Virus record (IMG/VR): IMGVR_UViG_3300019458_000021
Span: 124,001 to 188,000 of that record
Strand: one strand, 5' to 3'
DNA length: 64,000 nucleotides
Numbering within the stretch: the first letter of the stretch is position 1; the number at the start of each line of letters is the position of its first letter. Under the pieces are notes generated by a model. The model saw only the letters and a program-made list of their open reading frames with translations, was not told where the DNA came from and searched no databases. Positions 4,911 through 64,000 of the stretch are shown one piece after another. The position numbers and the translations under genes are program-made.

Positions 4911-7058
4911 ATGGCAACACTCGTTAGCCCAGGCGTAAGCGTAACCATTACGGATGAGAGCTTTTTCATCCCGGCTGCGGCTTTGACAGTTCCACTGCTT
5001 TTCATCGCTACTGCAGATGAAAAGAAACAGCCAGACGGCGTAACGGATGCTCCAGGCACCTTTGAAAGCAACGTTATTCGTACTGTCACATCGCTTCAGC
5101 AGAGCACACAACTCTATGGTATTCCGCGCTTTTTGGAAGATGAACAAGGATTGCCACTCAATGGCGATGCCCGTAACGAATACGGTCTTTTCGCTCTGAA
5201 TCAGTTTCTCGGCATTGGTGACCTCGCATACGTTATTCGTGCAAACGTCAACTTAAACGACAACCTCGATGATCTCCGCACTCTGTGGGATCAGAAAATG
5301 CAAGAAGCAAGTTTTGTTCTCGAGAACATCACTGCACAATTCATTTCTGAATACAACACAGTAAACGGTTACACACCGTCGTCAGGTGCAACATCAGGAT
5401 ATCAAGAAGCAGTTTTCGCTGCAGCAACGATCCTTCCAGCAACTGCTACAGGTCTTGTTGCTTTGACGACATACAGCTTCCAAGCAGTCGTTGATGGTGT
5501 AACATTTAACGGTTCGTTCCTTGGATCTGCTGCGTCAACGTTTGGTACATTGCTGACACAGATCAACACAATTCTTGGTGGTGTAGCTATCGCGTCGTTC
5601 TTCAATGGCGTAACACCTGCTCCAGTTGGCCCAGCAAACAGGATTCGCATTACAAGTGCAACTACTGGTCTGACATCAACAGTTGTGATTGACACAGCGT
5701 TTGTGGGCTTCGGTCCTAACGTATTCCCAGCATTGGTTGGTCCACCAGCATTCGTTACTTTGGGTCCGCAGGTGCGTGGTGACACACTGTTCAAGTACAC
5801 GGTAACTTCTGCAGAACTGCTTTCGTTGACAGAACAAGCAACAGCGTTCATCTGGGAAATGTTCTCGTTCAGCCGCGGTGTTCCGCCGCTGCATGACGAC
5901 TTCATGGATAACCACACATCGAGCCCACTTCCAGTGTTTCCGAACGGCTACGATCAGCCGCCTGTTCCGCCTGGTTATCTTGGTTTCCAAGGTATTGAAG
6001 CCGCTTGGGTTGCAGGTAATTTGGGATCGACGCCTGGTCGTGAAGACGAATGGACACCAACAGAAGCATCGAACACATTACTTGGTGCGGCAGATGATTT
6101 CAAATTCACGACTGAATTCTTGAACAAGACCGCGCTTGGCGCTAACGATGCAGCCCGTCGCGTTGCAATTGTGACCGCTCTGCAAGCATCGATCAACAGC
6201 AACACAGACATTCGTGGTGAAACATTCGAGTACAACCTGATCCTCTGCCCAGGTTACTGGGAAACCGTTGATGAGTTGAACAACCTCGTCATCGACATTC
6301 AAGAAGAGGCTATGGTTATTGCTGACACACCATTCAGTATGGATCCAGATCAAGTCGTAGCATGGGCTGCGACAACCGGTCGCACGCAAACACGTGATGT
6401 AGCATACTATTACCCACATGGCCTTGCATCGAACCTTGACGGCAAGAACGTATTCATTGCTGCTTCTGGTACAGCTCTTCGCACGATTGTGTTCAGCGAT
6501 GAAACAGCTGAGATCTGGTTTGCTCCAGCAGGTACTCGTCGTGGTCAGGTTTCCGGTGTAACAGATGTTGGTTACGTAACCGGCACACTTGGCACACCAA
6601 CAACATTCACACCAGTGGCTCTTAACCAGGGACAGCGTGATAACCTGTACAAGTACTTCACCAACGTCAACCCGATCGTGTTCTTCCCAGGCCGAGGCAT
6701 TCTAGTGTGGGGTCAGAAAACATCGGCACCAGATGCAAGCGCACTCGACCGTATCAATGTCATGCGTCTTGTCATGTATATCAAGCGTCAGCTTCGTAAG
6801 AACACAATGAGCTTCGTGTTCGAACCGAACGACCAACTGACCCGTGACAACTTAAAGGCAATGGTTGATGCATTCCTTGGTGATCTGATCGTCAAGCGTG
6901 GTCTGTTCGACTTCGCTACGGTTTGCGATGAAAGCAACAACACTCCAGATCGTATCGATAGAAACGAGATGTACATCGACGTAGCATTGAAGCCGGTGCG
7001 TGCAGCCGAATTCATCTACATCCCACTACGTATCGTTTCCACGGGAGCTCAGATCTAA
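4911..7058 (+). CDS. tail sheath protein (T4 gp18-like)
   Basis: MATLVSPGVSVT start; WFAPAGTRRG, NPIVFFPGRGILVWGQKT, DRINVMRL, FVFEPND, CDESNNTPDRID sheath C-terminal motifs. Confidence 0.95.
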   Translation: MATLVSPGVSVTITDESFFIPAAALTVPLLFIATADEKKQPDGVTDAPGTFESNVIRTVTSLQQSTQLYGIPRFLEDEQGLPLNGDARNEYGLFALNQFLGIGDLAYVIRANVNLNDNLDDLRTLWDQKMQEASFVLENITAQFISEYNTVNGYTPSSGATSGYQEAVFAAATILPATATGLVALTTYSFQAVVDGVTFNGSFLGSAASTFGTLLTQINTILGGVAIASFFNGVTPAPVGPANRIRITSATTGLTSTVVIDTAFVGFGPNVFPALVGPPAFVTLGPQVRGDTLFKYTVTSAELLSLTEQATAFIWEMFSFSRGVPPLHDDFMDNHTSSPLPVFPNGYDQPPVPPGYLGFQGIEAAWVAGNLGSTPGREDEWTPTEASNTLLGAADDFKFTTEFLNKTALGANDAARRVAIVTALQASINSNTDIRGETFEYNLILCPGYWETVDELNNLVIDIQEEAMVIADTPFSMDPDQVVAWAATTGRTQTRDVAYYYPHGLASNLDGKNVFIAASGTALRTIVFSDETAEIWFAPAGTRRGQVSGVTDVGYVTGTLGTPTTFTPVALNQGQRDNLYKYFTNVNPIVFFPGRGILVWGQKTSAPDASALDRINVMRLVMYIKRQLRKNTMSFVFEPNDQLTRDNLKAMVDAFLGDLIVKRGLFDFATVCDESNNTPDRIDRNEMYIDVALKPVRAAEFIYIPLRIVSTGAQI

Positions 7059-14669: not shown

Positions 14670-14707
14670 CCTTACTCTTAATAGAATAATGCGGTTGTTT
14701 TCCCCAC

Positions 14708-14714
14708 ATAAATA
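14708..14714 (+). promoter_or_regulatory. late promoter in hairpin loop upstream of HNH gene
   Basis: TTTTCCC(14698-14704)..ATAAATA..GGGAAAA(14723-14729). Confidence 0.55.
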
Positions 14715-14752
14715 CATATTCAGGGAAAAGTAAATAAGCTATAAGGAACAAT

Positions 14753-15292
14753 ATGGCATACACGGAAAAACAACGTGAATACAACCGTAGATGGCGGCAA
14801 AAGGATCCCAAACGCTGGCAACGGCACCTTGCGCAAGTGAAACAATGGCGTAAGGAAAACAGAGCGAAATGGCTTGAAACACACCGAGCAACGAGGTCCC
14901 GTCCCGAATACAAGGAGCGAGAGAAAAAACGAGCAATAGAAGCCCGTCGCAACAACCCTCTTAAATATGTTGCACAAGGTCTTCAACAGAGAGCAAGAAA
15001 GCTGGGCCTTGAGTGTAACGTTAACACGCAATATCTCAAATCTATATGGACTGACCAATGTCCAATTCTGAACGTGCCGTTGTTTGCTGGTGTAAAAAGA
15101 GGGACAATACCAGAACTGAACCTTGCAAGTGTTGATCGTCTTGACAACACAAAAGGATATATAAAGGGCAACGTTCACTTTATTTCTTACAGAGTGAACA
15201 ATATAAAATCTGATGCGTCGTTTGAAGAAATCGAACGGCTGTACAACTGGTGGAAAGCAAACAAAGCGAATGAAAGTCAACCAACTACTTGA
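14753..15292 (+). mobile_element. free-standing HNH-type homing endonuclease
   Basis: Basic helical N-terminus, then CPILNVPL, SVDRLDNTKGYIKGNVHFISYRVNNIK motif. Confidence 0.8.
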
Positions 15293-15767
15293 GAACGCTC
15301 AATCAACTTTATTTGTTCCAATTAGTCCGTCAGGCGGAGGCAAATCTACTCTCTATCAAAAACTAAAAACACAAAATCCCGATCTTCTCGTTTTTTCGCT
15401 GGATATACTGCGTCATGAATTTTACGACCCTAGTGATTACGCCGCCGCTTGGAGGGCATCAAATGAAGATCCACAGTTCAAACAAAGAGCAAATGATCGT
15501 TTCCTTGAATTAATTAAAACGGGAAAAGATATCTATGTGGATAATACATCTTTGACACCTAAACGCCGCCGATTTTACCTTAATGCAGCTCGTCAACACG
15601 GTTACAAAACTATAGCCTATGTCTTTGATGTTGACCTGCCAACATTAATTGCCAGACAAAAAACCAGATCAGATAAAAGTGTGCCTGAAGAAGCCGTTCG
15701 CCAACAGTATAAGTCGTTAGTTGGTCCACAAGCGGGCGAATTTGATCAGGTTGTTAATGTAAAATAA
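15270..15767 (+). CDS. P-loop kinase (polynucleotide kinase/AAA_33-like)
   Basis: SPSGGGKST Walker A, SLDILR, IYVDNTSL, R.KTR..KSVPEEAVRQQ; ATG 15270. Confidence 0.85.
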   Translation: MKVNQLLENAQSTLFVPISPSGGGKSTLYQKLKTQNPDLLVFSLDILRHEFYDPSDYAAAWRASNEDPQFKQRANDRFLELIKTGKDIYVDNTSLTPKRRRFYLNAARQHGYKTIAYVFDVDLPTLIARQKTRSDKSVPEEAVRQQYKSLVGPQAGEFDQVVNVK

Positions 15768-16385: not shown

Positions 16386-16935
16386 GCTGATCCGAGGTTG
16401 CCGTATTCTCGATCAGCTTAAGCTACTAGCTGAAGACAGCACATATCCGGAGTTGTACACCGATATCCAGCGCGGATTTCCGAACACACAACGACGTCAG
16501 CATGCGACAAATGAAGTGTCGATTCGGCAGCTGTCATATCTGCCGTATATTGGAATGAAAATGCTGCAGATTCGTGCTCAATGTCGTAGCAATCAACATG
16601 ACTATCAACCGATTCTTCAATTGTTGAACGTCACGTTCGAAAACGCTGACTCTCCAGAGAACGTCACATTCAACGCACAGGGCACAGATTATCACATGCA
16701 GCCTGTTGACCTTGATCAAAGTCGGGTGAAAGTTCGCTGCAACTGTCTTGACTTCTACTACCGATTTGCAATGACGAATTTTAACGACAACAGTCTTGTT
16801 GGTCGTTCACCACCAGTGTACCGTCGGGTGCCAGGATCGAACCGACCACCAGCAAATCCGATGAACGTTCCTGGGCTTTGCCGCCATTTAATCAAGGTTG
16901 TTCAGCGGTTGCAACAGTTAGGATTCGTTCGATAG
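16357..16935 (+). CDS. conserved jumbo-phage protein with SWIM-like Zn motif
   Basis: VKVRCNCLDFYYRF...GLCRHLIKV; start codon uncertain (GTG). Confidence 0.65.
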   Translation: MNSTQSLALKLIRGCRILDQLKLLAEDSTYPELYTDIQRGFPNTQRRQHATNEVSIRQLSYLPYIGMKMLQIRAQCRSNQHDYQPILQLLNVTFENADSPENVTFNAQGTDYHMQPVDLDQSRVKVRCNCLDFYYRFAMTNFNDNSLVGRSPPVYRRVPGSNRPPANPMNVPGLCRHLIKVVQRLQQLGFVR

Positions 16936-16984
16936 GTCTCTCTGTTCTTCTGGATTCTATATAACAAAAACCAGGAGATAACAG

Positions 16985-17956
16985 ATGGATACCCGAACTA
17001 TACAACACATTCTTCGTTGGGAATGGTTACCAGTCGTTGGTGATAATTTCCGTAAAGCTCGTATCGAAAGAGAAGAAGCTGCTGAATATCAAAAGATGTT
17101 TGAGGCACAGCTTCATTGGTTGAAGGCAATGGCCGGAGCTCCACACGATCTAGCAAAGAAAAAGCTCCATCACGATGCATATTGGCGCAAGCGCTGGGAA
17201 AAACGAAGCAACGAACCAATTTCACTCGCCCCAGTCTTTCCATTCTTTGGAACACCTGGAGACGTGTCTACGACGGCGCGTCCAATCGAAGAAATTATCG
17301 AAGCAATTCCTGACAAACGTATCCCGAAATTTGACGAAGACACCACACTTGCTGAACTTTTGTATCCGACAAAAAGAGTTCTGCCAAGTATTTCTCAAGA
17401 AGAAGCGGTAGCTCGAATCACAAGACTGGCAGGTCAGTGGTACGATCGGATTGATAGAATTGGTTTGAAACACAACTGGAGTATTGAACATCTTGAAGGA
17501 ATCGAGCTTGAAGATGTCTTTCTTCACCTTCTCGGAAATCTAGGCAATGTGCAAGCATCTGGTTATGCTGACGATCCTGACATCCAGCTTGTGTTTTTCG
17601 TTCATTCGCCTCGTTTTATTCCTGCATGCATCGAGAAAGATTGCGACAGTTCGAACAGCATCATCATTCCGTTCAGCCCAAATTGTACATGGCAAGGTCG
17701 TGGCTTGCTGAATTTTGACACAAGCATGAGAATCGCTCGTTGGTTTGATTGTGAATTGAAACCAGTCGCTGATGAGTGGCGAGCAACGTTTATGCTTGAT
17801 CGGACATGTTCATGGCAATCGAAGAATCCATCTGAAGCAATCCTGAAAGCACTTTTACAGGCTAGGATCCTTGAGATTCAGACAGGGCTTTCCGCACAGC
17901 TGCCGCCTTTTCCTCCAAACGACGCTTCGTCGGAAGATCTGGTTCTAGTCCAGTAA
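16985..17956 (+). CDS. hypothetical protein
   Basis: 323 aa ORF with AGGAG SD. Confidence 0.7.
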   Translation: MDTRTIQHILRWEWLPVVGDNFRKARIEREEAAEYQKMFEAQLHWLKAMAGAPHDLAKKKLHHDAYWRKRWEKRSNEPISLAPVFPFFGTPGDVSTTARPIEEIIEAIPDKRIPKFDEDTTLAELLYPTKRVLPSISQEEAVARITRLAGQWYDRIDRIGLKHNWSIEHLEGIELEDVFLHLLGNLGNVQASGYADDPDIQLVFFVHSPRFIPACIEKDCDSSNSIIIPFSPNCTWQGRGLLNFDTSMRIARWFDCELKPVADEWRATFMLDRTCSWQSKNPSEAILKALLQARILEIQTGLSAQLPPFPPNDASSEDLVLVQ

Positions 17957-47881: not shown

Positions 47882-48006
47882 TGTTTTACGTTTATGGTCT
47901 AATCGATAGTTTCACCAATAAAGTTTTCTATGTTGGTAAGGGCTGCAAAGATACCATCGGAAACACGAGAGAAAATTCGTGCAACACTCAAAAGGAAAGC
48001 AAATGA
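47881..48006 (+). pseudogene. GIY-YIG endonuclease stub between the nucleotidyltransferase halves
   Basis: MFYVYGLIDSFTNKVFYVGKG, plus out-of-frame PSETREKIRATLKRK (NUMOD3-like); TAATG and ATGA couplings on either side. Confidence 0.7.
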
Positions 48007-49802
48007 GCAGAGACACTTTACTTAATGATCCTGACGTGATGTTGCTTTGTAAACATTCTCCACGTCAAATTGACTTTGTCTCATTGGTGCACAACTTTAC
48101 GCCTGAAAAACGGTTTAAGGTTGACCTTAGTGAGTTCCACAAAGGCTACCGATTGGTACCATTTGCAGCGGACACATATGGTGTATACGAATCTGCCAAT
48201 CATGAAACGTTCACGGAAAGCGACGGAACGTTGAACACCGTGTATGAAGGTAATACACACGAGTTGGGTTCACCGTTGATGATTGTTAAATTCAACAAAG
48301 ACGTCTATCTGAGTGCAAAGGAAAAATGGAGTCAATATTGGACGTGGAAGAGAGAACGAAACGTTGTACGAAACGCTTTGGAAGAGCAATTTGGATATGA
48401 TTGTTATACTGACGATACAGAGTTTCTTACGAACGATGGTTGGAAAAAGTTTGATGAGGTGTCAGAAACGGACACTCTCGCTACTTTCAATCCATTATCT
48501 CATAAGGTTGAATATCAAACGCCGAGAGAACGAATTGAAGGAACGTTTACCGGAAATCTGTATCATTTTACAGGCCAACACGTAGACGTATGTGTTACAC
48601 CAAATCATAAAATGTACATAAGAGAGTTTTCACGGACGCTTGACAAACATGTGAGTGATTGGTCATTTGTTGATGCAGCGTTTGTTCCGGAATGTTTTGA
48701 TACACTTCACACCATAGTACCGAAAAAAGCGCGACAGAATTTGCCCAAAGGATTCACTAAAGCAATCTTAGATTACATTCCACTGCACTCCTACTTACGA
48801 GTCTTGGGATGGTACATTAGTGACGGAAGTTGCTCCTTTCAACCGAACGGTTGCGTTTCATGTGTATCGATTTCACAATCGAAACCACAATCGCGATTGA
48901 CACAAAACCTGACTCGCCAACGTAAACTCAACAAAATAAAATGTACGGAGAAGGTATACGAGGCAAAAGGAATAGCAAACTTTCCTGAAAAGCGTTGGTT
49001 TTTCGATCAAAAACTGTCCACAATGATATACGAAGATTGTGGACATGGTAGTCATCAAAAGCGAATTCCTCAATGGTGCTTTGAGTTGACACAGCGTGAG
49101 ATGAACATACTCCTTACGTGCTTGTTGCAAGGCGACGGAACAAAAAAGAACCATCAAGAAGAAACTTATGTTTATTATACAATCAATGCAGCACTTGCTG
49201 ACGATGTACAACGATTGGCCTTTTTGTGTGGGTTTGAAACATCAAAATGGGGTCCTTATTATTCGTCAACGTTGTTTGATGATAATCTGGAAATGTACCA
49301 AGTGCATATAAACAAGAAAGCGTCTAATACAAAAAGAACTTATCGTAGTAACAATAATATTCAAACAATACCCGTTGTAAATCAAAGAATTGTTTGTTTT
49401 ATGACTTCCAACCACACTCTTGTTACACGAAGAAACGGAAAAATAGCACTCCACTCGAATTCAAAGCATGCAATGCACTTGGTTCGCTTGCTTCGCATGG
49501 GCGTGGAAGCTCTAACTGAAGGCAAGATCATCGTTCGTCGTCCAGACGCAAAAGAACTGTTGGAGATCAGAGCTGGTTCGTGGACTTATGAGCAGGTGGT
49601 GGAGTACGCTGAAAAGATGGACGTCATGGTCCGTGAACAGCTATATCCAACAACCAGCTTGCCTAAGAAGCCGAACTACAAACTTGCGGCACAGTTGACG
49701 ATTGAGGTTCAAGACATGATGTGGAACCGAACCATTCGCACAATGAGTGAAGAGGAGAAGTTTCTGATCGTTGGCAACCAACAATACAGGATCACAGACT
49801 AA
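48003..49802 (+). CDS. nucleotidyltransferase C-terminal half containing an intein
   Basis: PRQIDFVSLV, W..YW.WKRERN..R..LEEQFGYD|intein|SKHAMHLVRLLRMG.E.L..G.I.VRRPDA.ELLEIR.G. Confidence 0.85.
   Translation: MSRDTLLNDPDVMLLCKHSPRQIDFVSLVHNFTPEKRFKVDLSEFHKGYRLVPFAADTYGVYESANHETFTESDGTLNTVYEGNTHELGSPLMIVKFNKDVYLSAKEKWSQYWTWKRERNVVRNALEEQFGYDCYTDDTEFLTNDGWKKFDEVSETDTLATFNPLSHKVEYQTPRERIEGTFTGNLYHFTGQHVDVCVTPNHKMYIREFSRTLDKHVSDWSFVDAAFVPECFDTLHTIVPKKARQNLPKGFTKAILDYIPLHSYLRVLGWYISDGSCSFQPNGCVSCVSISQSKPQSRLTQNLTRQRKLNKIKCTEKVYEAKGIANFPEKRWFFDQKLSTMIYEDCGHGSHQKRIPQWCFELTQREMNILLTCLLQGDGTKKNHQEETYVYYTINAALADDVQRLAFLCGFETSKWGPYYSSTLFDDNLEMYQVHINKKASNTKRTYRSNNNIQTIPVVNQRIVCFMTSNHTLVTRRNGKIALHSNSKHAMHLVRLLRMGVEALTEGKIIVRRPDAKELLEIRAGSWTYEQVVEYAEKMDVMVREQLYPTTSLPKKPNYKLAAQLTIEVQDMMWNRTIRTMSEEEKFLIVGNQQYRITD
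48402..49460 (+). mobile_element. intein (353 aa) with LAGLIDADG-type endonuclease domain
   Basis: Begins CYTDDTEFLT..GWK; block B VTPNHKM; LGWYISDGS and LLQGDGT motifs; ends HTLVTRRNGKIALHSN before +1 Ser; removal restores GYD-SKHAMH. Confidence 0.92.
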
Positions 49803-56945: not shown

Positions 56946-57310
56946 TGGCTCGTAGAAAGAAACCAGACGCAGAGACGCCTGAACAGGCGAGACAACGAAG
57001 AATTTTCGAGACGATTTGTGACCATGCAACGCGTGGTGAAAAGGTATCGTGGAATCGATTGATGGACAACATGGTGTCTTTGCTTGCAAAGTTAAAACCG
57101 ATTGAAGACAAAATCGTCGCGCTGCAGTCACAGAAACTTCCGATCATTGACGAAGTTGCGAATCTTCGCCGACGAATGGTAATGGACTGTGTTCATCCGT
57201 ATGAACAACTAGTGCTTACTGCTGAACACGTTGAGTGCAAATTCTGCATGAGGCGCTTTCGCGTGCCAAATATGCACGACGATAGCGTGTTGAGTCAGGA
57301 TTCCCAATGA
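56945..57310 (+). CDS. hypothetical protein with coiled coil and CxH..CxxC
   Basis: 121 aa, coupled start. Confidence 0.65.
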   Translation: MARRKKPDAETPEQARQRRIFETICDHATRGEKVSWNRLMDNMVSLLAKLKPIEDKIVALQSQKLPIIDEVANLRRRMVMDCVHPYEQLVLTAEHVECKFCMRRFRVPNMHDDSVLSQDSQ

Positions 57311-58239
57311 ACAAGGAACTATTGAACTATCTTCGTCATCTTTCCGAAGAAGACATCAAATCACTTTCACAGCGAGCTCTGAAAACGTGTGAAGAAGTTG
57401 GTGAGCTCGCTCGTGTTGTTTTGCCTTATGACGGAGCATATGCAACAAATCATCGTTTTGCGACCCGCGAGGATATTCTCGAAGAAGCTGTCGATACGGT
57501 GTTCTGTGCTTTATCAGTTGCTCATGCGCTTCAGTTTACCGACGAAGAAATTGAAGATATGATGTGGCTGAAAGCGGAAAAGTGGGCTCGACTGCAACAC
57601 AACGAAAAGAACCTGAAATACCCAGTACCATTTGAGATTCATATTACTGTTGAACTGGATCCAATGATAGAAGATTCCGAGCGATTCAAAACAACATGCG
57701 CCGAGGCGAACGTAAAACCACTTGATCTCGTAACACAAACAAGAACGATCAAAGATGTGATGACATCATCAAAACATTTCGGAGACAATCGGTCGGCCTA
57801 TGAAGAGATGAAACGAATTACTGGCCGTTTGATGGCAGCAGGATTCATGGTAGTTCGAGAAAAGATTGAAACTGTTTCTTGGCATCCAGCCGCTCCACAA
57901 CACATCGGTGATGGTTCAAAAATGCCAGAGAATTGCTATTTTGAAAGTCATATTCCTGTTCGACTCCATCCAAATGATATGGATATTCTTACTCGTCGTT
58001 GTAAGGAAATGGATCTACATCTTTCCCGAAATGGCTTTAAGACACACGAAGACGGTGACGTGACATACATGGCAACATATCGAGTATATGAAGGCACCAA
58101 TGAACAGTTCCGTGCATATGTAGATCAGGCCGTTCAATATCTTGACGCCCAGGAATACATCGTTGGAAAACCAATGAACGAATTTAGCGTATATGATACG
58201 AAAGTGAGCCACGACGCAAAATGGCTGACCGGAAACTAA
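57307..58239 (+). CDS. MazG-like NTP pyrophosphohydrolase fused to an unknown domain
   Basis: KTCEEVGELA..EEAVD; C-terminal FEIHITV, YFESHI, HLSRN. Confidence 0.7.
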   Translation: MNKELLNYLRHLSEEDIKSLSQRALKTCEEVGELARVVLPYDGAYATNHRFATREDILEEAVDTVFCALSVAHALQFTDEEIEDMMWLKAEKWARLQHNEKNLKYPVPFEIHITVELDPMIEDSERFKTTCAEANVKPLDLVTQTRTIKDVMTSSKHFGDNRSAYEEMKRITGRLMAAGFMVVREKIETVSWHPAAPQHIGDGSKMPENCYFESHIPVRLHPNDMDILTRRCKEMDLHLSRNGFKTHEDGDVTYMATYRVYEGTNEQFRAYVDQAVQYLDAQEYIVGKPMNEFSVYDTKVSHDAKWLTGN

Positions 58240-59395: not shown

Positions 59396-59402
59396 CTCTT
59401 CC

Positions 59403-59409
59403 ATAAATA
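59403..59409 (+). promoter_or_regulatory. late promoter overlapping hairpin
   Basis: ATAAATA; AAATAGAG/CTCTATTT 8 bp stem. Confidence 0.65.
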
Positions 59410-59442
59410 GAGGTTACAATCTCTATTTCAGGGGAAGCTCTC

Positions 59443-60681
59443 ATGACAACGTACGTAATCGATTTTTCGGACCCTCTTAAAGATGGGTTTTCGATCGCAC
59501 CAGGTGGATTCAACGGACCTGGCGGTTCTGCCTCAAATACATCTCTCCGTCTTTACGGTCGAGGCGCACTAGAATGGGGCGAATCTGTTAACGAAGACCT
59601 CGTCCGTCTTACAGAAAACTTCAACAGCGCTACACCACCTATTACACCAGTTGACGGTATGTTGTGGTTGCGAACAAAGTACTACTGGCTCCGCACGGCA
59701 GTTGATTGGTATGTTCGTGATCCTGATTCACCTGCTGCTTGGGTATTCCTGTCAACAATTGCAACCGGTGGTGTTGTCAACGGTGGTGCTGTAGGTACAA
59801 ACGTAGCTCCAGCTCACGCGATCGGTGTGTATTGGTACACAGGTGGTGCTCCAACTGATCCTCTGACATCGAACCTTGACGCGTTTGGTGACCCACTCAC
59901 ACCCACAACATTGTATCGTTGGGACTCAGCATACAAGCAAATTCCAGCCGGTTGGATGCCACAAGCATTCACACAAAATGCAGCTGCTCCAACTGCTGCA
60001 AACTTCCCGGAGAAGAGCTTGTTGGTTTGGGACGCGTTCCAGGGTGTTAGCGGAACGTTCGTTGCTCCACCAATTTCGATTGTTGCACCAACTCAACCAG
60101 CACAGGCAACGGAAGGTACATTGTGGTGGGATAGTGTCAACAACATTCTGTATGTGTGGAACGATTTCACGACAACATGGCAGCCATTGGTTACAGGAGG
60201 CGGTGGCGGATCTGGTGATACGACTTATCTACGTCTTGATGGCACAAACACACCAACAGCTAACCTAAACATTGGTGGCTTCCGTCTGACAAACATTACA
60301 ACAAACGTAGGTGTAGCAACTGACGCTTTGAGTGTCGGTGCCGCCGATACTCGTTACGTAAACATAACCGGTGATACAATGACTGGCGTGCTGGCGATGG
60401 GTGCATTCAACATCACCGGCCTACCTGTCATGTCTTACCCTGACTTGGTCAACACCGAGTTTGCAGCAACAAAGAACTACGTTAATACTGCAGTCACGTC
60501 GATTACAAGCGGTGGCGGTTCGGTTACTGTTCCGTCGGTGTTTGTATCGCCAGCAGTTCCGACCTATAAGGCTGGTGACATCTATGTCTTGGGCGCTGTG
60601 ATCTACATTGCTATCGGCGTAGGTGTAGGTGCTCCTCCGGGTGGTAACTGGCGACAAGTGTTCCCAGCACAGTACTCATAA
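59443..60681 (+). CDS. virion structural protein (baseplate/short fibre-like)
   Basis: TSLRLYGRG..WGESVNEDLVRLTENF..PP..PVDGMLW; W..VFPAQYS end; late promoter. Confidence 0.7.
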   Translation: MTTYVIDFSDPLKDGFSIAPGGFNGPGGSASNTSLRLYGRGALEWGESVNEDLVRLTENFNSATPPITPVDGMLWLRTKYYWLRTAVDWYVRDPDSPAAWVFLSTIATGGVVNGGAVGTNVAPAHAIGVYWYTGGAPTDPLTSNLDAFGDPLTPTTLYRWDSAYKQIPAGWMPQAFTQNAAAPTAANFPEKSLLVWDAFQGVSGTFVAPPISIVAPTQPAQATEGTLWWDSVNNILYVWNDFTTTWQPLVTGGGGGSGDTTYLRLDGTNTPTANLNIGGFRLTNITTNVGVATDALSVGAADTRYVNITGDTMTGVLAMGAFNITGLPVMSYPDLVNTEFAATKNYVNTAVTSITSGGGSVTVPSVFVSPAVPTYKAGDIYVLGAVIYIAIGVGVGAPPGGNWRQVFPAQYS

Positions 60682-60683
60682 AG

Positions 60684-60712
60684 TTGAGATTGTGACCGAG
60701 TTGTAGTATGAT
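60684..60712 (+). promoter_or_regulatory. sigma70-like promoter for the radical SAM operon
   Basis: TTGAGA-17 nt-TATGAT, then AAGGA SD. Confidence 0.5.
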
Positions 60713-60732
60713 CGACAGACAAGGAAAAGGTA

Positions 60733-61908
60733 ATGACAGGAGCTGCAGTCTCATTCTACAAGCGATCTGACGCGGGTACATTGCGTAAGCATACACCGTC
60801 AGCATTCAAAACAGCTCCCCTTGCAATTGCTCCTCAGCTAATGCTGACAGAGCTAATGGTGTATTTGAAGACGACTGAAACCTGTCAACTCAACTGCGCA
60901 CACTGCTTCACCAACGGAATCAACGGACGAAAAATCTACTTCGATCCAGCTCGAACAATCGATTGGTTCCATCGTCTCCATGCAGTAAATCCAACCCTGG
61001 CGGGAGGAAGTGTCGCTTTTCATGGTGGGGAGCCAATGCTTGCTCCAATCGCCGATATGCGTCGTACATGGGAAGCGTGCAAGGATTTGTGGCCAACAGT
61101 TTGGTGGACAACAACGACAAACCTTGTATACAAACTCGACGATGAAAAGCGCCTATTCTTCAAGGAATGCTTTACAGACGGCATCTCAACTTCTTGGGAC
61201 AAGAATATCCGATTTGATAACGAAAAACAGGAAGCTCTGTGGGCTAAAAACGTCCAAACACTTCTCGATGATGGGCATAAGATCACGCTTATGGTAAGCT
61301 TAAATCGTGCGATCACTGATATGAACCCGGAAGATTTCCTGCGTTGGGTTGGTGATATCGGCGTTCACTATTTGCATCTTGAACGAATCACCCCAAATGG
61401 TAACGCAACTCGCAACCCACACATCCTTCCTTCAAATAAAGAACTCGATGCTTGGATGCTGCGATTATGGGATGCAAGTTTGAAGCTTGGCACACATAAG
61501 TACTTTGCTAATCTGTTTTTGAACGGAATTTTGTCGAGCTTTGTGTCATTAACACATTCGGGTTGTCGTTGTCGAAGTTGCGAGAAGAAGATTTTCACCC
61601 TGAACGCAGATGGAACAATTGGCGGATGTCCAAACAGTGCAGTAGACAACACGTTCGGAACAATGGAAGATGATATTTTCTCGTTGCTTAGCAGCGAGGG
61701 GCGAATCGAAAACATTGCTTGTGAAACACAACGCAATCCGCTGTGCTACACGTGCGATGTTTATGACGTTTGCAACGGTGATTGTCACCAACTTGCATGG
61801 GAAGGCGACGTTTGTGCAAGTCCGAAATCGTTGATGCGTCGATTCAAAGCAGAGAACAATAGAGAACAGTATGAGATGTTCCTTAACGGGTTCATCGGCA
61901 AGGAGTAA
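60733..61908 (+). CDS. radical SAM enzyme with SPASM domain
   Basis: CQLNCAHC (CxxxCxxC), FHGGEP, C-terminal C..GGCP..CxxCxxxxxCxGxC..C. Confidence 0.92.
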   Translation: MTGAAVSFYKRSDAGTLRKHTPSAFKTAPLAIAPQLMLTELMVYLKTTETCQLNCAHCFTNGINGRKIYFDPARTIDWFHRLHAVNPTLAGGSVAFHGGEPMLAPIADMRRTWEACKDLWPTVWWTTTTNLVYKLDDEKRLFFKECFTDGISTSWDKNIRFDNEKQEALWAKNVQTLLDDGHKITLMVSLNRAITDMNPEDFLRWVGDIGVHYLHLERITPNGNATRNPHILPSNKELDAWMLRLWDASLKLGTHKYFANLFLNGILSSFVSLTHSGCRCRSCEKKIFTLNADGTIGGCPNSAVDNTFGTMEDDIFSLLSSEGRIENIACETQRNPLCYTCDVYDVCNGDCHQLAWEGDVCASPKSLMRRFKAENNREQYEMFLNGFIGKE

Positions 61909-61910
61909 CT

Positions 61911-62564
61911 ATGGCTATCGCTGGCACAGACATCACGAAAGACAATATCACTGGATCAGGTGGCGTTGACTTGAACTCGTTCAAGCAACAAATCACCGAC
62001 GTTGTCAACGCACTCACAAAAACAACAAGCGTGTCCGCAAACGGGACTGCACTAGGTCAAAAGCCATTTGGTAGTGGTGCACCAATTAGTGGATCGTTGT
62101 CAAGCACCAACTATGGTGGAACACCTCCTCTGTCTGCGCCACTTGTCGCTCCTGGCACGGTGACGAATTCACCACAAGCAAGTGACATTGCAGGTGCGAA
62201 CATTGCAGCAGCCACTCTGATCACATTGTTCCAAAACACAGCTGTATTACTGTCCCGTGTTCGTCGCTATTCAATGGTAAAAACATACCTTAGTCCAGCG
62301 CCTGTTATCCAACTATCACTTACAGAACCAGGCCGCTATGGTTATCTGACAACAACGTACCAAGCAAATCCAGCAACAACAACACCAGCAATCACGACAT
62401 CTTTGGCAGCTCTTACTGGCGATATTAGTGCAGCAACGTTAAACACAGTAATTGACAACGTTGACACCGCAATTACGAACCACAGAAACACAACCGTCGC
62501 GTTCACGGAAACGTGGTGTCACTCAAGCTGTCACAGCAGTCATAGTTCAAGGAACCGTCGCTAA
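61911..62564 (+). CDS. virion-like protein with C-terminal His-Xaa-Ser repeat; putative radical SAM substrate
   Basis: Thr/Ala/Ser/Gly-rich 217 aa ending TWCHSSCHSSHSSRNRR; starts 2 nt after the rSAM stop. Confidence 0.75.
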   Translation: MAIAGTDITKDNITGSGGVDLNSFKQQITDVVNALTKTTSVSANGTALGQKPFGSGAPISGSLSSTNYGGTPPLSAPLVAPGTVTNSPQASDIAGANIAAATLITLFQNTAVLLSRVRRYSMVKTYLSPAPVIQLSLTEPGRYGYLTTTYQANPATTTPAITTSLAALTGDISAATLNTVIDNVDTAITNHRNTTVAFTETWCHSSCHSSHSSRNRR

Positions 62565-63328
62565 TGACCACAGTTACAACAGAACTTCCGCTTTCAATGG
62601 ACGCCTTGCGTCAGGTAATTACACAACCAGATGCAGGAGTGGTTGTTGACTACAACAACAGTAACCTCAAAGGCCGTGCAGCGCTCATTTACATGACGAA
62701 TACAAACTTACCAAATGTTGCTCTGAACATGACAGATGTGTCTCTCGAAGAGAAGTTTGTACTCGTTGACGACTACATCACTCACAAGTCAATCCTGCAT
62801 GTAGCACAACTAGTCAACACCGTTTTGAATGTGTTATTCGCCGTTCGGAAAGTTGACATTGGTGCTGAACAAGACATATTGGATCAAGTGTCGCTATTTC
62901 CACAAGAACATGTCGGCGAATATCTTGCAAATCCAACACGAGCTGAACACATCAACAAGCTGATTGAACTTCTCGACAGTCTACCTCTGTACGCTGTAAC
63001 GTGTTCAACATCATTCCGCGAAGTATACGGTAAAGGAAAAGAAGCGTTTGAGCCGGTTAACGACATTGATCATACTGGTTTCACATTCGTCCACCTGTTG
63101 ACTCATCCGTTGTTCCTCGAATATTTCACACAACCAGCTACGACGACACTGAAGTATTACGTTCAGCAGTTCGACGAGTACATGTATAACGGAAAATCGT
63201 TGTTTCCATTTTTGGTAAACTCGCCTGTATTCGGTATTCTTGAGTGTTACATCACAGGGGCGGTGGACCTTGATCAGCTGCTTACAGCACACTCAGAAAT
63301 GAATGCTTTGGAAGGAGCTGCAGCCTAA
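62564..63328 (+). CDS. hypothetical protein of the radical SAM operon
   Basis: 254 aa; TAATG coupling on both sides. Confidence 0.75.
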   Translation: MTTVTTELPLSMDALRQVITQPDAGVVVDYNNSNLKGRAALIYMTNTNLPNVALNMTDVSLEEKFVLVDDYITHKSILHVAQLVNTVLNVLFAVRKVDIGAEQDILDQVSLFPQEHVGEYLANPTRAEHINKLIELLDSLPLYAVTCSTSFREVYGKGKEAFEPVNDIDHTGFTFVHLLTHPLFLEYFTQPATTTLKYYVQQFDEYMYNGKSLFPFLVNSPVFGILECYITGAVDLDQLLTAHSEMNALEGAAA

Positions 63329-64000
63329 TGCTACACCTGTTCAACAAGATATACGTCAAGGGAGATCATCTTGTGAAAGGTTCGCGAGATGCAATTATCA
63401 TCTCGCCGACCTATGGAAATGTTCCATTTTACACGACGAAATTCTCAACTCGGGCAAACAACGAAAAAACAGGCCAACTGTGCTATTCAGCAACGTCGCT
63501 CAAAGAACTGCTCGACACTCACTTTGGTGGATCTGATGCAAAATTCTTCAATTACCTCATGAAATGGCCTGCCGAGAAACGATTAACGATCTACGCCGAT
63601 CTTCCGACAATGGTTGATATTGCAACGAGATTCTTCAAAACAGTATTCCCAAAGATGACGGAAGACACATATGTTGTGGTGATGAAGTTACTGCTCTCCC
63701 GTATCAACTACTACCTAGGCGGAGCTGTTTTGCCATTCGTAACATTAACAGAGGACCAGGCAAATTCATACCGCGTCGAAACACTTCAAATTCTTGAAGA
63801 TGTTGCTGGATTGCGCCATCGATTTCAAGAAACTGCACGCTGGCGCCTGACAAAAGTGGCACGTGACAGTATCATCCGCAACTGCAGCGTTGAATACCAA
63901 TTGGCGACCTATCTAACAAATCCAAAATGGGCACATGCTCGTGCGTTTGAGAAAAAGGCTGTGTCAATGGCTAAGAAGCAAATCATTCACGAATATGCTC
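63328..64000 (+). CDS. hypothetical protein (3'-partial)
   Basis: MLHLFNKIYVK... open to the window end; TAATG coupling. Confidence 0.75.
   Translation, partial: MLHLFNKIYVKGDHLVKGSRDAIIISPTYGNVPFYTTKFSTRANNEKTGQLCYSATSLKELLDTHFGGSDAKFFNYLMKWPAEKRLTIYADLPTMVDIATRFFKTVFPKMTEDTYVVVMKLLLSRINYYLGGAVLPFVTLTEDQANSYRVETLQILEDVAGLRHRFQETARWRLTKVARDSIIRNCSVEYQLATYLTNPKWAHARAFEKKAVSMAKKQIIHEYA

Follow-up and report, generated by a model that had tools for sequence, protein, structure and literature searches.

A jumbo-phage radical-SAM cassette adjoining a virion-type protein, inferred to act on a fibre component

Results

Gene content of the locus

We analyzed a 64,000-nt stretch of IMG/VR record IMGVR_UViG_3300019458_000021 (positions 124,001 to 188,000; hereafter, the window), which derives from a jumbo phage and whose last genes form the start of a large, widespread, and so far undescribed cassette. 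The following features, all on the + strand, are found there.

59443..60681 (+), gene for a 412-aa fibre-like virion protein directly upstream of the cassette
60684..60712 (+), sigma-70-like promoter match TTGAGA-17-TATGAT in the only intergenic gap
60733..61908 (+), rSAM1, a 391-aa radical SAM/SPASM enzyme, the first of four rSAM-type genes in the cassette
61911..62564 (+), 217-aa T/A/S/G-rich protein (the tail protein), the putative substrate and virion component
62517..62561 (+), C-terminal tail CHSS-CHSS-HSS-RNRR, with the conserved (C-H-x-S/N)x3 core
62564..63328 (+), 254-aa conserved partner protein (phrog_20767)
63328..64000 (+), first of two paralogous ~360-aa "LFN...ISP" proteins, cut by the window end (complete at L005:12488-13591; names beginning with L denote loci of our analysis)

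The first-pass annotation had described a CxxxCxxC + SPASM enzyme followed 2 nt later by a 217-aa protein with a His-Xaa-Ser tail and then by two TAATG-coupled genes, and each of these sequence statements was confirmed. In rSAM1, CQLNCAHC lies at aa 51-58 (nt 60883-60906) and GGEP at aa 98, and the full 7-Cys SPASM pattern (nt 61564-61815) comprises C278..C283-x10-G-x4-C299, then C338-x2-C-x5-C-x3-C351, and then C361. The tail ORF starts 2 nt after the rSAM1 stop, with AAGGAG 5 nt upstream of its ATG. The protein is 45.6% T/A/S/G, its only two Cys are C203 and C207, and it ends WCHSSCHSSHSSRNRR (nt 62514-62561). TAATG stop/start overlaps occur at 62562-62566 and 63326-63330. The annotation had also placed the genes behind a sigma70-like promoter. 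That site matches the consensus at 10 of 12 positions, but 6 such sites were found in 4.7 kb against 5.9 expected from shuffles; therefore, it is a consensus match only and remains unproven as a promoter.

The window holds only the first four genes of the cassette, and the operon that had been proposed comprises no more than these. Beyond the window end, the cassette continues with three more rSAM-type genes (two radical SAM/SPASM enzymes and one divergent CxxxCxGC protein) and two 2OG-Fe(II) oxygenases, which lie at L005:14674-20980. No peptidase, protease, transporter, or exporter gene was present in the cassettes inspected. In addition, no RRE/PqqD-type recognition domain was found by Pfam or NCBIfam searches of the cassette proteins.

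Conservation of the enzyme-tail pair

To determine whether the pairing of rSAM1 with the tail protein could be due to chance, we carried out surveys from both directions. Starting from the enzyme, which has 385 relatives in viral contigs, we found that 68 of 69 viral loci have a tail-type ORF within 2.6 kb downstream, with 57 of them directly adjacent. The one exception, L011, has no tail motif within 21 kb. Lack of conservation of the tail in homologues that retain the rSAM gene had been named beforehand as a possible refutation, and this result fails to refute the interpretation. Starting from the tail motif, we found 141 in-frame C-terminal tails in 118 of 120 viral loci (at least 118 viral loci), as well as 38 genome loci carrying the motif in frame at an ORF end. 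Of 87 tail-anchored viral loci with room upstream, 68 have rSAM1 on the same strand, 59 of them within 50 nt. Accordingly, the pairing is far beyond chance. However, a second architecture has tails without an rSAM1 orthologue, so rSAM1 is not the only possible tail enzyme.

The tail protein belongs to a family of 759 clusters at 50% identity (459 clusters at E<=1e-10), all unnamed and without a Pfam or NCBIfam model. The body of the protein is only 18-31% identical between lineages, and the tail is its only strictly conserved part. The conserved unit is C-H-x-(S/N), repeated three times within the C-terminal 12-16 residues and usually followed by RxRR: the three His are always kept, two or three Cys are kept, and position 4 is S (about 87%) or N. 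Thus, Cys is nearly as conserved as His, whereas the W that had been included in the proposed modification site is not conserved. RxRR is replaced by a single L/I in about a quarter of the enzyme-anchored tails. The Cys-less third repeat of the window is also present in a second contig from another sample (L006) and in a 75%-identical relative (L182), so it is not a sequencing error. Synonymous codons vary freely, and Ser uses both AGY and TCN codons, so selection acts on the amino acids.

In rSAM1, the cluster motifs are invariant in 24 homologues, and 59 alignment columns are invariant, including all cluster cysteines. The N-terminal extension carrying the ..FYK.. motif is conserved in relatives without a cupin gene. 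The partner protein (phrog_20767, E 1e-35) is present in 85 of 120 tail-anchored loci and in every complete cassette inspected. Homologues of the LFN protein are RSL2 ORF069, DT01 PA10_00063, and genes in L179 and L260. Collectively, a conserved core of rSAM1, the tail protein, phrog_20767, and the 365-aa and 412-aa rSAM enzymes is found in Atu_ph07, Phosso, RSL2, DT01, metagenomic phages, and Bdellovibrionota, in whose chromosomes the cassette lies next to fibre genes.

Association with virions and fibre genes

The fibre-like gene directly upstream of rSAM1 has PHROG hits to a virion structural protein (phrog_14394, E 4.5e-5) and a tail fibre (phrog_16472, E 0.008). Its N-terminal domain is 44% identical over 48 aa (E 2e-10) to Atu_ph07 gp176, which is a proteomically confirmed virion protein. 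Homologues occupy the same position in L007, L010, L182, Atu_ph07, and Phosso. Indeed, fibre-like genes lie upstream almost everywhere, and fibre-type genes lie directly upstream in the window, L007, L010, L182, L186, L179, L260, and Atu_ph07.

The Atu_ph07 homologue of the tail protein, gp170 (31.9 kDa), is present in purified virions with 8 peptides and 35% coverage, and it is most abundant in gel band 1, where proteins above 120 kDa run (PMC6102473, Table S5). By contrast, the enzymes gp165-169, 171, and 172 are absent from virions. The gel behavior of gp170 could also reflect an SDS-stable fibre-like oligomer, since the tail-fibre proteins gp288, gp327, and gp472 also run high.

These data also bear on an alternative in which the tail is an unmodified metal-binding or Fe-S-binding motif of a trimeric fibre protein, three chains of which would supply Cys and His ligands, as the HxH iron sites (e.g., the iron-binding His motifs of T4 gp37) do in T4-type fibres. 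The rSAM enzymes would then act on something else, such as the fibre proteins, a small molecule, or DNA. Cys and His are classical ligands, here with a regular i, i+4 spacing, and such motifs can simply bind metal; moreover, the protein is in virions and no modification has been observed for any member. Nevertheless, we consider this alternative unlikely, as it explains neither the near-obligate, often overlapping adjacency to rSAM1 across very divergent phages and bacteria, nor the strong conservation of Ser/Asn at position 4 through two codon families.

A second alternative is that the tail is the core of a released ribosomal natural product or peptide-derived cofactor of the PQQ or mycofactocin type, with the ~190-aa body serving as a long leader or carrier. 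The core-like part is short and invariant, and the cassettes carry many tailoring enzymes (four to seven rSAM-type genes, 2OG oxygenases, and a cupin). We regard this as improbable because no protease or exporter was found in any cassette inspected, the body is itself a conserved family, and the homologue is found at 35% coverage in virions.

Comparison with known radical-SAM systems

We next compared the cassette with known maturation systems. The bacterial HxsABCD (His-Xaa-Ser) system of Pseudomonadota matures an HxS-repeat protein with two rSAM enzymes and blocks phage DNA entry (PMC13128918). In both cases a full-size protein of about 200 aa, rather than a short peptide, is involved (in our cassette, as the putative substrate), the His-x-Ser-type repeat is rich in Ser and basic residues, and more than one rSAM is present, more than one being needed in Hxs. 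The modified HxsA motif S-H-R-S-S also resembles C-H-x-S-C with Ser in place of Cys. The tail of the window protein does contain three H-x-S units (H204, H208, and H211), but these have period 4 with a leading Cys and sit at the C-terminus. There was no hit to HxsA (TIGR03979; NCBIfam, E<=0.1) for 8 tail proteins from different lineages, namely that of the window and seven homologues from Atu_ph07, RSL2, L179, L260, L012, and L186. No HxsB or HxsC hit was listed for rSAM1, the only HxsC hit was that of the 412-aa rSAM (32 bits against a 268-bit cut-off, over the rSAM core only), and no cassette protein scanned against NCBIfam hit HxsD. The tail protein has no Pfam domain, and thus no peptidoglycan-binding domain, and its N-terminus is hydrophilic, with no signal-like stretch. 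In addition, the cassette has four or more rSAM-type genes plus oxygenases, is phage- or predator-encoded, and is linked to fibre genes. The cassette is therefore not a member of the bacterial Hxs system. A phage-borne version of the HXS defence, acting in superinfection exclusion or counter-defence by binding incoming DNA through basic HxS repeats, is suggested by the three H-x-S units plus RxRR but appears very unlikely, given these negative results, the absence of RxRR from about a quarter of the enzyme-anchored tails, the virion location of the homologue, and the position of the genes among fibre genes.

The best NCBIfam hit of rSAM1 is the anaerobic sulfatase-maturating enzyme (anSME, TIGR03942), but with 42 bits against a 349-bit cut-off, so the enzyme is not a housekeeping sulfatase maturase. 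anSME structures (4k36-4k39, 35 bits) are also among the best PDB sequence hits, and the last repeat, C-H-x-S-R, loosely recalls the C-x-P-x-R motif (target C/S-x-P/A-x-R). This sulfatase-like reading was rejected because the Arg is lacking in the tails ending in L/I, and there is no sulfatase gene nearby.

Three-residue cyclophane-forming maturases (triceptides: XyeB, GrrM, and FxsB with FxS-type precursors) likewise pair a SPASM enzyme with a precursor containing repeated aromatic-x-(Ser/Asn) units, and His-x-Ser/Asn fits this motif logic. However, rSAM1 scored only 17.1 bits against 450 for XyeB and 14.2 against 370 for FxsB. Moreover, the Cys preceding each His, which is almost as conserved as the His, has no role in that chemistry, and the putative substrate is a virion protein.

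Ranthipeptide and sactipeptide maturases (PapB with repeated Cys-x3-Asp, SCIFF/CteB) make thioether rings within short repeated Cys-x(n) units, and QhpD cross-links the QhpC protein subunit, which stays in a complex. We observed weak full-length similarities of rSAM1 to PapB (24.9 bits against 340), and of the 365-aa rSAM to PapB (25.6 against 340) and QhpD (25.2 against 453), i.e., all far below cut-off. In our cassette, the acceptor would be Ser/Asn or His rather than Asp/Glu, and one Cys can be lost while the His is kept. The remaining NCBIfam hits of rSAM1 were DynA (38 bits) and DarE (30 bits), both far below cut-off, and the SPASM domain (TIGR04085, 23.7 bits), just under its 27-bit cut-off. 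Its PHROG hit was phrog_1802 (E 2e-57).

Interpretation

The observation itself, an rSAM/SPASM enzyme paired with a His-x-Ser-tailed protein, is real. As for its interpretation, that the phage crosslinks the tail of a full-size, structural-looking protein in the manner of Hxs and cyclophane-forming systems, our data support it in part: the pair is conserved and the tail sits on a full-size protein that is virion-associated in a cultured relative, whereas Hxs membership is not supported, and the proposed His-to-Ser cyclophane chemistry is one of at least three options.

We favor, with moderate confidence, the explanation that the window contains the 5' end of a multi-enzyme maturation cassette for a fibre-associated virion protein, with the C-terminal triple repeat most likely the site of a covalent modification of a host-recognition fibre component. 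In this view, rSAM1, translationally coupled to the tail gene, would bind the unstructured tail and use a 5'-deoxyadenosyl radical to abstract a hydrogen, forming covalent bonds within each C-H-x-S/N unit. The bond could be a Cys-S thioether to a neighboring carbon, as in ranthipeptides and sactipeptides, or a His-ring-to-Ser/Asn C-beta link, as in three-residue cyclophanes. The other two conserved rSAM orthogroups and the oxygenases would then tailor the product further, and the matured protein would be built into the virion with the fibre proteins, where a rigid Cys/His-derived knot would act as a staple, a metal site, or an adhesive tip. Our analysis establishes the gene pairing and its conservation, the cassette content, the selection on the tail residues, and, for one homologue, virion presence and anomalous high-molecular-weight gel migration; that the tail is the substrate and is covalently changed by the enzyme, the type of bond, and the role in the virion are inferred.

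A further-reaching possibility, which we consider doubtful, is that jumbo phages and predatory Bdellovibrionota share a dedicated machine of three or more radical SAM enzymes that builds a new Cys/His-derived cross-linked or metal-binding structure on the C-terminus of a fibre-tip protein. This would be the first radical-SAM post-translational modification of a virion structural protein, used for attaching to or penetrating prey cells, and it may also covalently staple fibre components together.

Radical SAM maturation is known for small peptides, cofactors, and a few cellular proteins, but our literature search found no report of it for a virus particle component, and a comparative review of jumbo phages (PMC7824862) does not mention radical SAM genes. 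The family occurs in cultured phages of Agrobacterium, Sinorhizobium, Ralstonia, Burkholderia, and Pseudomonas, where papers list the genes only as accessory proteins of unknown function. The system thus offers a new putative enzyme/substrate pair with a very simple 12-residue core that is easy to test, a possible explanation for an anomalously migrating virion protein, a possible attachment chemistry shared between phages and bacterial predators, and a useful comparison for the still unsolved +8 Da chemistry of the Hxs defence system.

Additional similarity and structure searches

A DNA similarity search of 59400-64000 against 50,697 GenBank phages found no match, and neither did tblastn of the tail protein against the same set; homologues were only seen by reading the genes next to the rSAM hits. 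Look-ups of two Bdellovibrionota tail proteins found no record. PDB sequence and profile searches gave nothing for the tail, phrog_20767, LFN, and CxxxCxGC families and only weak generic hits for rSAM1, so the chemistry cannot be read from relatives. The LFN protein also has no Pfam or NCBIfam hit. The AlphaFold model of the tail protein was poor (pLDDT 58), giving no indication of its place in a fibre, and its Foldseek search gave nothing (best E 2.8). The phrog_20767 model was confident (pLDDT 90.9, pTM 0.86) yet had no PDB fold match (best E 0.46), which is in line with a predicted novel fold.

PADLOC gave only rSAM-core similarity to viperins. A haem-c-type reading (CX3CH) was considered but appears implausible for a cytoplasmic phage protein with no haem lyase. 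Among the 47 pattern hits in the genome contigs, 9 are chance matches that are not at ORF ends. The second CH..CH match in the window (6758, + strand) lies in a short out-of-frame stretch overlapping the tail-sheath gene, and we take it as chance.

Sequence features of the radical SAM locus

We first examined the ORF list and the raw sequence of the window, and every sequence statement of the first-pass annotation was confirmed. The features concerned are as follows.

60684-60712: promoter-like site TTGAGA-17-TATGAT
60733-61908 (+ strand): 391-aa radical SAM/SPASM ORF (rSAM1)
61911-62564: 217-aa ORF with the C-terminal tail
62564-63328: ORF following through a TAATG overlap (the phrog_20767 partner protein)
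63328 to the window end: second ORF following through a TAATG overlap

The rSAM1 ORF carries CQLNCAHC at residues 51-58 and GGEP at residue 98, together with a complete SPASM-type cysteine pattern (C278..C283-x10-G-x4-C299, then C338-x2-C-x5-C-x3-C351, then C361). The 217-aa ORF starts two nucleotides after the rSAM1 stop and 5 nt after an AAGGAG. It is 45.6% Thr/Ala/Ser/Gly, its only two cysteines are C203 and C207, and it ends WCHSSCHSSHSSRNRR (62514-62561). Although the promoter-like site exists, such matches are no more frequent here than in shuffled sequence (6 against 5.9), and therefore it remains only a consensus match. The protein encoded at 62564-63328 is predicted to fold, with confidence (pLDDT 90.9), into an alpha/beta-plus-helical structure that has no detectable relative in the PDB.

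The window is from a phage and encodes a tail sheath (4911-7058, E 6e-161), tail-fibre and structural proteins, and a helicase. Over the part compared (window 60001-64000), it is identical to a 237-kb IMG/VR contig (L005) and closely matches a second contig from another sample (L006), which shows the same tail variant. No GenBank phage matches at the DNA level.

The pairing of rSAM1 with the C-terminal tail is conserved

Homologues of rSAM1 with 38-55% identity were found in cultured jumbo phages of two unrelated lineages, namely Atu_ph07 and Phosso; RSL2, RSF1, the FLC phages, and SURPRISE13; and pPa_SNUABM_DT01. In all four records inspected, the next gene ends in CHxSCHxSCHxxRxRR. Three further surveys were performed to make this observation unbiased.

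In the first survey, which was anchored on the enzyme, a profile of rSAM1 found 385 relatives in viral contigs. Among the best 80 of these, 69 loci have at least 700 nt downstream, and 68 of the 69 have a tail-type ORF within 2.6 kb, with 57 having it directly adjacent, whereas the one exception is cut short. In addition, a viral contig (L011, IMGVR_UViG_3300033182_000152) carries a 46%-identical rSAM1 homologue with a cupin upstream and two further rSAM genes downstream, but no CH..CH motif anywhere in the 21 kb examined; this may be a cassette whose substrate is encoded elsewhere.

In the second survey, which was anchored on the tail alone, a degenerate DNA pattern gave at least 120 viral stretches, and 118 of the 120 contain the motif in frame at the very end of an ORF of 61-364 aa (median 184). 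Of 87 loci with room upstream, 68 have rSAM1 on the same strand, 59 of them within 50 nt. The same pattern gave 47 hits in 596 Gb of bacterial and archaeal genomes, of which 38 are real tails with the cassette and 9 are chance matches that are not at ORF ends. In the third survey, an exhaustive profile search uncovered 759 clusters at 50% identity, 459 of them at E<=1e-10. A separate word-seeded search found at least 740 clusters at 90% identity; all of the 120 listed are unnamed or called 'hypothetical protein', and none has a Pfam domain.

Conservation is concentrated in the tail residues

Between lineages, the protein bodies are only 18-31% identical, and the invariant columns are those of the tail. 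Among 150 diverse representatives, 133 end in (CHxx)3-RxRR, with position 4 of each unit being Ser (about 87%) or Asn and position 3 being free. About a quarter of the enzyme-anchored tails end in (CHxx)3 followed by a single Leu or Ile, without RxRR. Variants that lose a Cys keep the His: the window and the related locus L182 have CHSS-CHSS-HSS, and two further variants (P0148 and P0183) have CHSN-H(A/S)NT-CHxS. Codons vary freely at every fixed residue, and Ser uses both the AGY and TCN codon families, and therefore the constraint is on the amino acids and not on a DNA repeat. The Trp that the first-pass annotation had counted as part of the motif is not conserved.

The cassette extends well beyond the window

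The cassette is much larger than the first-pass annotation had described. On L005, the genes after the window end are a second 'LFN' paralogue; a 345-aa protein of a divergent family (14674-15711); a radical SAM/SPASM protein ('rSAM_412'); a 174-aa ORF (16851-17375); another radical SAM/SPASM protein ('rSAM_365'); two uncharacterised ORFs; and two 2OG-Fe(II) oxygenases. The 345-aa family (family A6) has no Pfam, NCBIfam, or PDB hit, but it displays an invariant CxxxCxGC and a C-terminal group of four Cys; it looks like a very divergent radical SAM family and is present in 0-4 paralogues per cassette. The 174-aa ORF, which lies between two rSAM genes, has no hit in Pfam, NCBIfam, or PADLOC, and since it is absent at that position from the close relative L179 (a Bdellovibrionota genome contig), it may be an insertion. 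Some relatives (the related viral contigs L007 and L010) carry seven rSAM-type genes.

The set shared by all complete cassettes comprises rSAM1, the tail protein, phrog_20767, rSAM_365, and rSAM_412, and this holds for Atu_ph07, Phosso, RSL2, DT01, metagenomic phages, and Bdellovibrionota. No peptidase or transporter was seen in any cassette inspected. A cupin gene with an HxD...H motif directly upstream of rSAM1 (loci L180-L259; also L001:4424-5008, L003:4499-4987, and L004:4480-4986) co-occurs only with tails ending in RxRR (33 of 46 against 0 of 27; Fisher p 3e-10, not corrected for phylogeny, by which the comparison is confounded). This hints that the cupin acts on the Arg end. The window's phage has RNRR but no cupin.

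A tail-protein homologue is present in virions, and fibre-type genes lie upstream

In the published Atu_ph07 virion proteome (PMC6102473, Table S5), the tail-protein homologue gp170 has a stated mass of 31.89 kDa, matching its 296 aa, and it was found with 8 unique peptides and 35% coverage. It appeared in gel bands 1-9 and was most abundant in band 1, the top of the gel, where proteins above 120 kDa run, whereas other proteins of about 30 kDa peak in bands 7-8. Indeed, gp170 is the only well-supported protein under 40 kDa that peaks in band 1. The enzymes (gp165-169, 171, and 172) were not detected, whereas gp176 and gp177, encoded upstream, were detected. The 412-aa ORF upstream of the cassette in the window shares its N-terminal domain with gp176 (E 2e-10), and it also has fibre and structural PHROG hits.

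Fibre-type genes precede the cassette elsewhere as well. Three Peptidase_S74 proteins precede it in L179; this domain (Pfam PF13884) is the intramolecular chaperone domain of fibres. ORFs of 400-800 aa that look structural precede it in the loci L186, L190, and L203. In a second architecture of the same system, found in viral contigs (L012:2523-3286, L089:7783-8555, L099:4689-5452, and L084:2791-3620), giant fibre-like ORFs of 700-2700 aa that end ..GIA.SD..G.VEVK(V/I) are followed directly by one or two ~127-aa CHxS-tail proteins and then by 3-5 divergent CxxxCxGC proteins, with no rSAM1 orthologue.

The cassette also occurs in Bdellovibrionota

Most of the real genome hits are in Bdellovibrionota, a group of predatory bacteria. 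In some of them (contigs L152, L154, L175, L260, and L179), the cassette sits on large contigs (1.3-2.8 Mb) or has housekeeping flanks, next to Peptidase_S74 fibre-type proteins. One hit lies on a 176-kb contig flanked by housekeeping genes, next to a Peptidase_S74 protein with a pilin-like N-terminus. These are metagenome-assembled genomes, and some contigs could be mis-binned phage; L179 is an example, as it has the same gene order as the window and its rSAM1 matches at E 5e-168.

Comparison with known radical SAM systems

HxsABCD was recently shown to be an anti-phage defence, in which two rSAM enzymes and HxsD mature HxsA, a protein with a peptidoglycan-binding domain; HxsA acquires a +8 Da change on an S-H-R-S-S motif and blocks DNA entry (PMC13128918). 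The phage system would work on the same kind of motif and also on a full-size protein. However, it fails every HMM-based membership test for Hxs, and it lacks the export and cell-wall features. Among other named rSAM families, rSAM1 scores 42 bits against anSME (cut-off 349), 38 against DynA, 25 against PapB, 17 against XyeB, and 14 against FxsB, and its profile finds only weak PDB relatives. It is therefore a separate deep SPASM family.

Papers on the cultured phages list the genes only as cupin, Fe-S oxidoreductase, radical SAM, and 2OG oxygenase accessory proteins, and a broad jumbo-phage review does not mention them. Further literature searches found no description of the system.

Putative maturation of a fibre-associated virion protein

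The best-supported reading is that the tail is the substrate core of a multi-step radical SAM maturation and that the product is a fibre-associated virion protein. The gene pairing, its conservation, the content of the cassette, the selection on the tail residues, and the presence of one homologue in virions with its top-of-gel migration are shown by the data, whereas the role of the tail as a substrate, its covalent modification, and the association of the product with fibres are inferred. Several bond types could be envisaged: a thioether from each Cys fits the Cx3 repeat logic of ranthipeptides, a His-to-Ser/Asn cyclophane fits the stricter conservation of His and of position 4, and an Hxs-like carbon insertion is also possible. 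The top-of-gel migration of gp170 is compatible with intermolecular cross-links, but it is also compatible with an SDS-stable oligomer. Rival readings are that the tail is an unmodified metal site, that it gives rise to a released peptide or cofactor, or that the protein is an Hxs-like exclusion protein.

Collectively, the observation made in the first-pass annotation is real and non-random, and it points to a large undescribed system. Its interpretation was supported in part: the core idea, namely an rSAM enzyme acting on the tail of a structural-looking protein, is largely borne out on present evidence, whereas the assignment to the Hxs family, the extent of the operon, and the specific chemistry are not. 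Radical SAM protein maturation is already known, and we regard this system as a form of it that differs from the Hxs system in the features compared here.

Other genes in the window

A 607-aa ORF (47979-49802) has a thymidylate-synthase-like segment (aa 127-231) and a nucleotidyltransferase segment (aa 484-590), and it could be a nucleotide or base-modification enzyme. In addition, a MazG-like pyrophosphatase (57307-58239; phrog_1247, E 3e-38) lies upstream of the cassette. The gene order MazG, a 153-aa clamp-loader-like ORF, a 237-aa ORF, and then the fibre-like gene is kept in the related contig L007, and from the 153-aa ORF onward in L009/L010.
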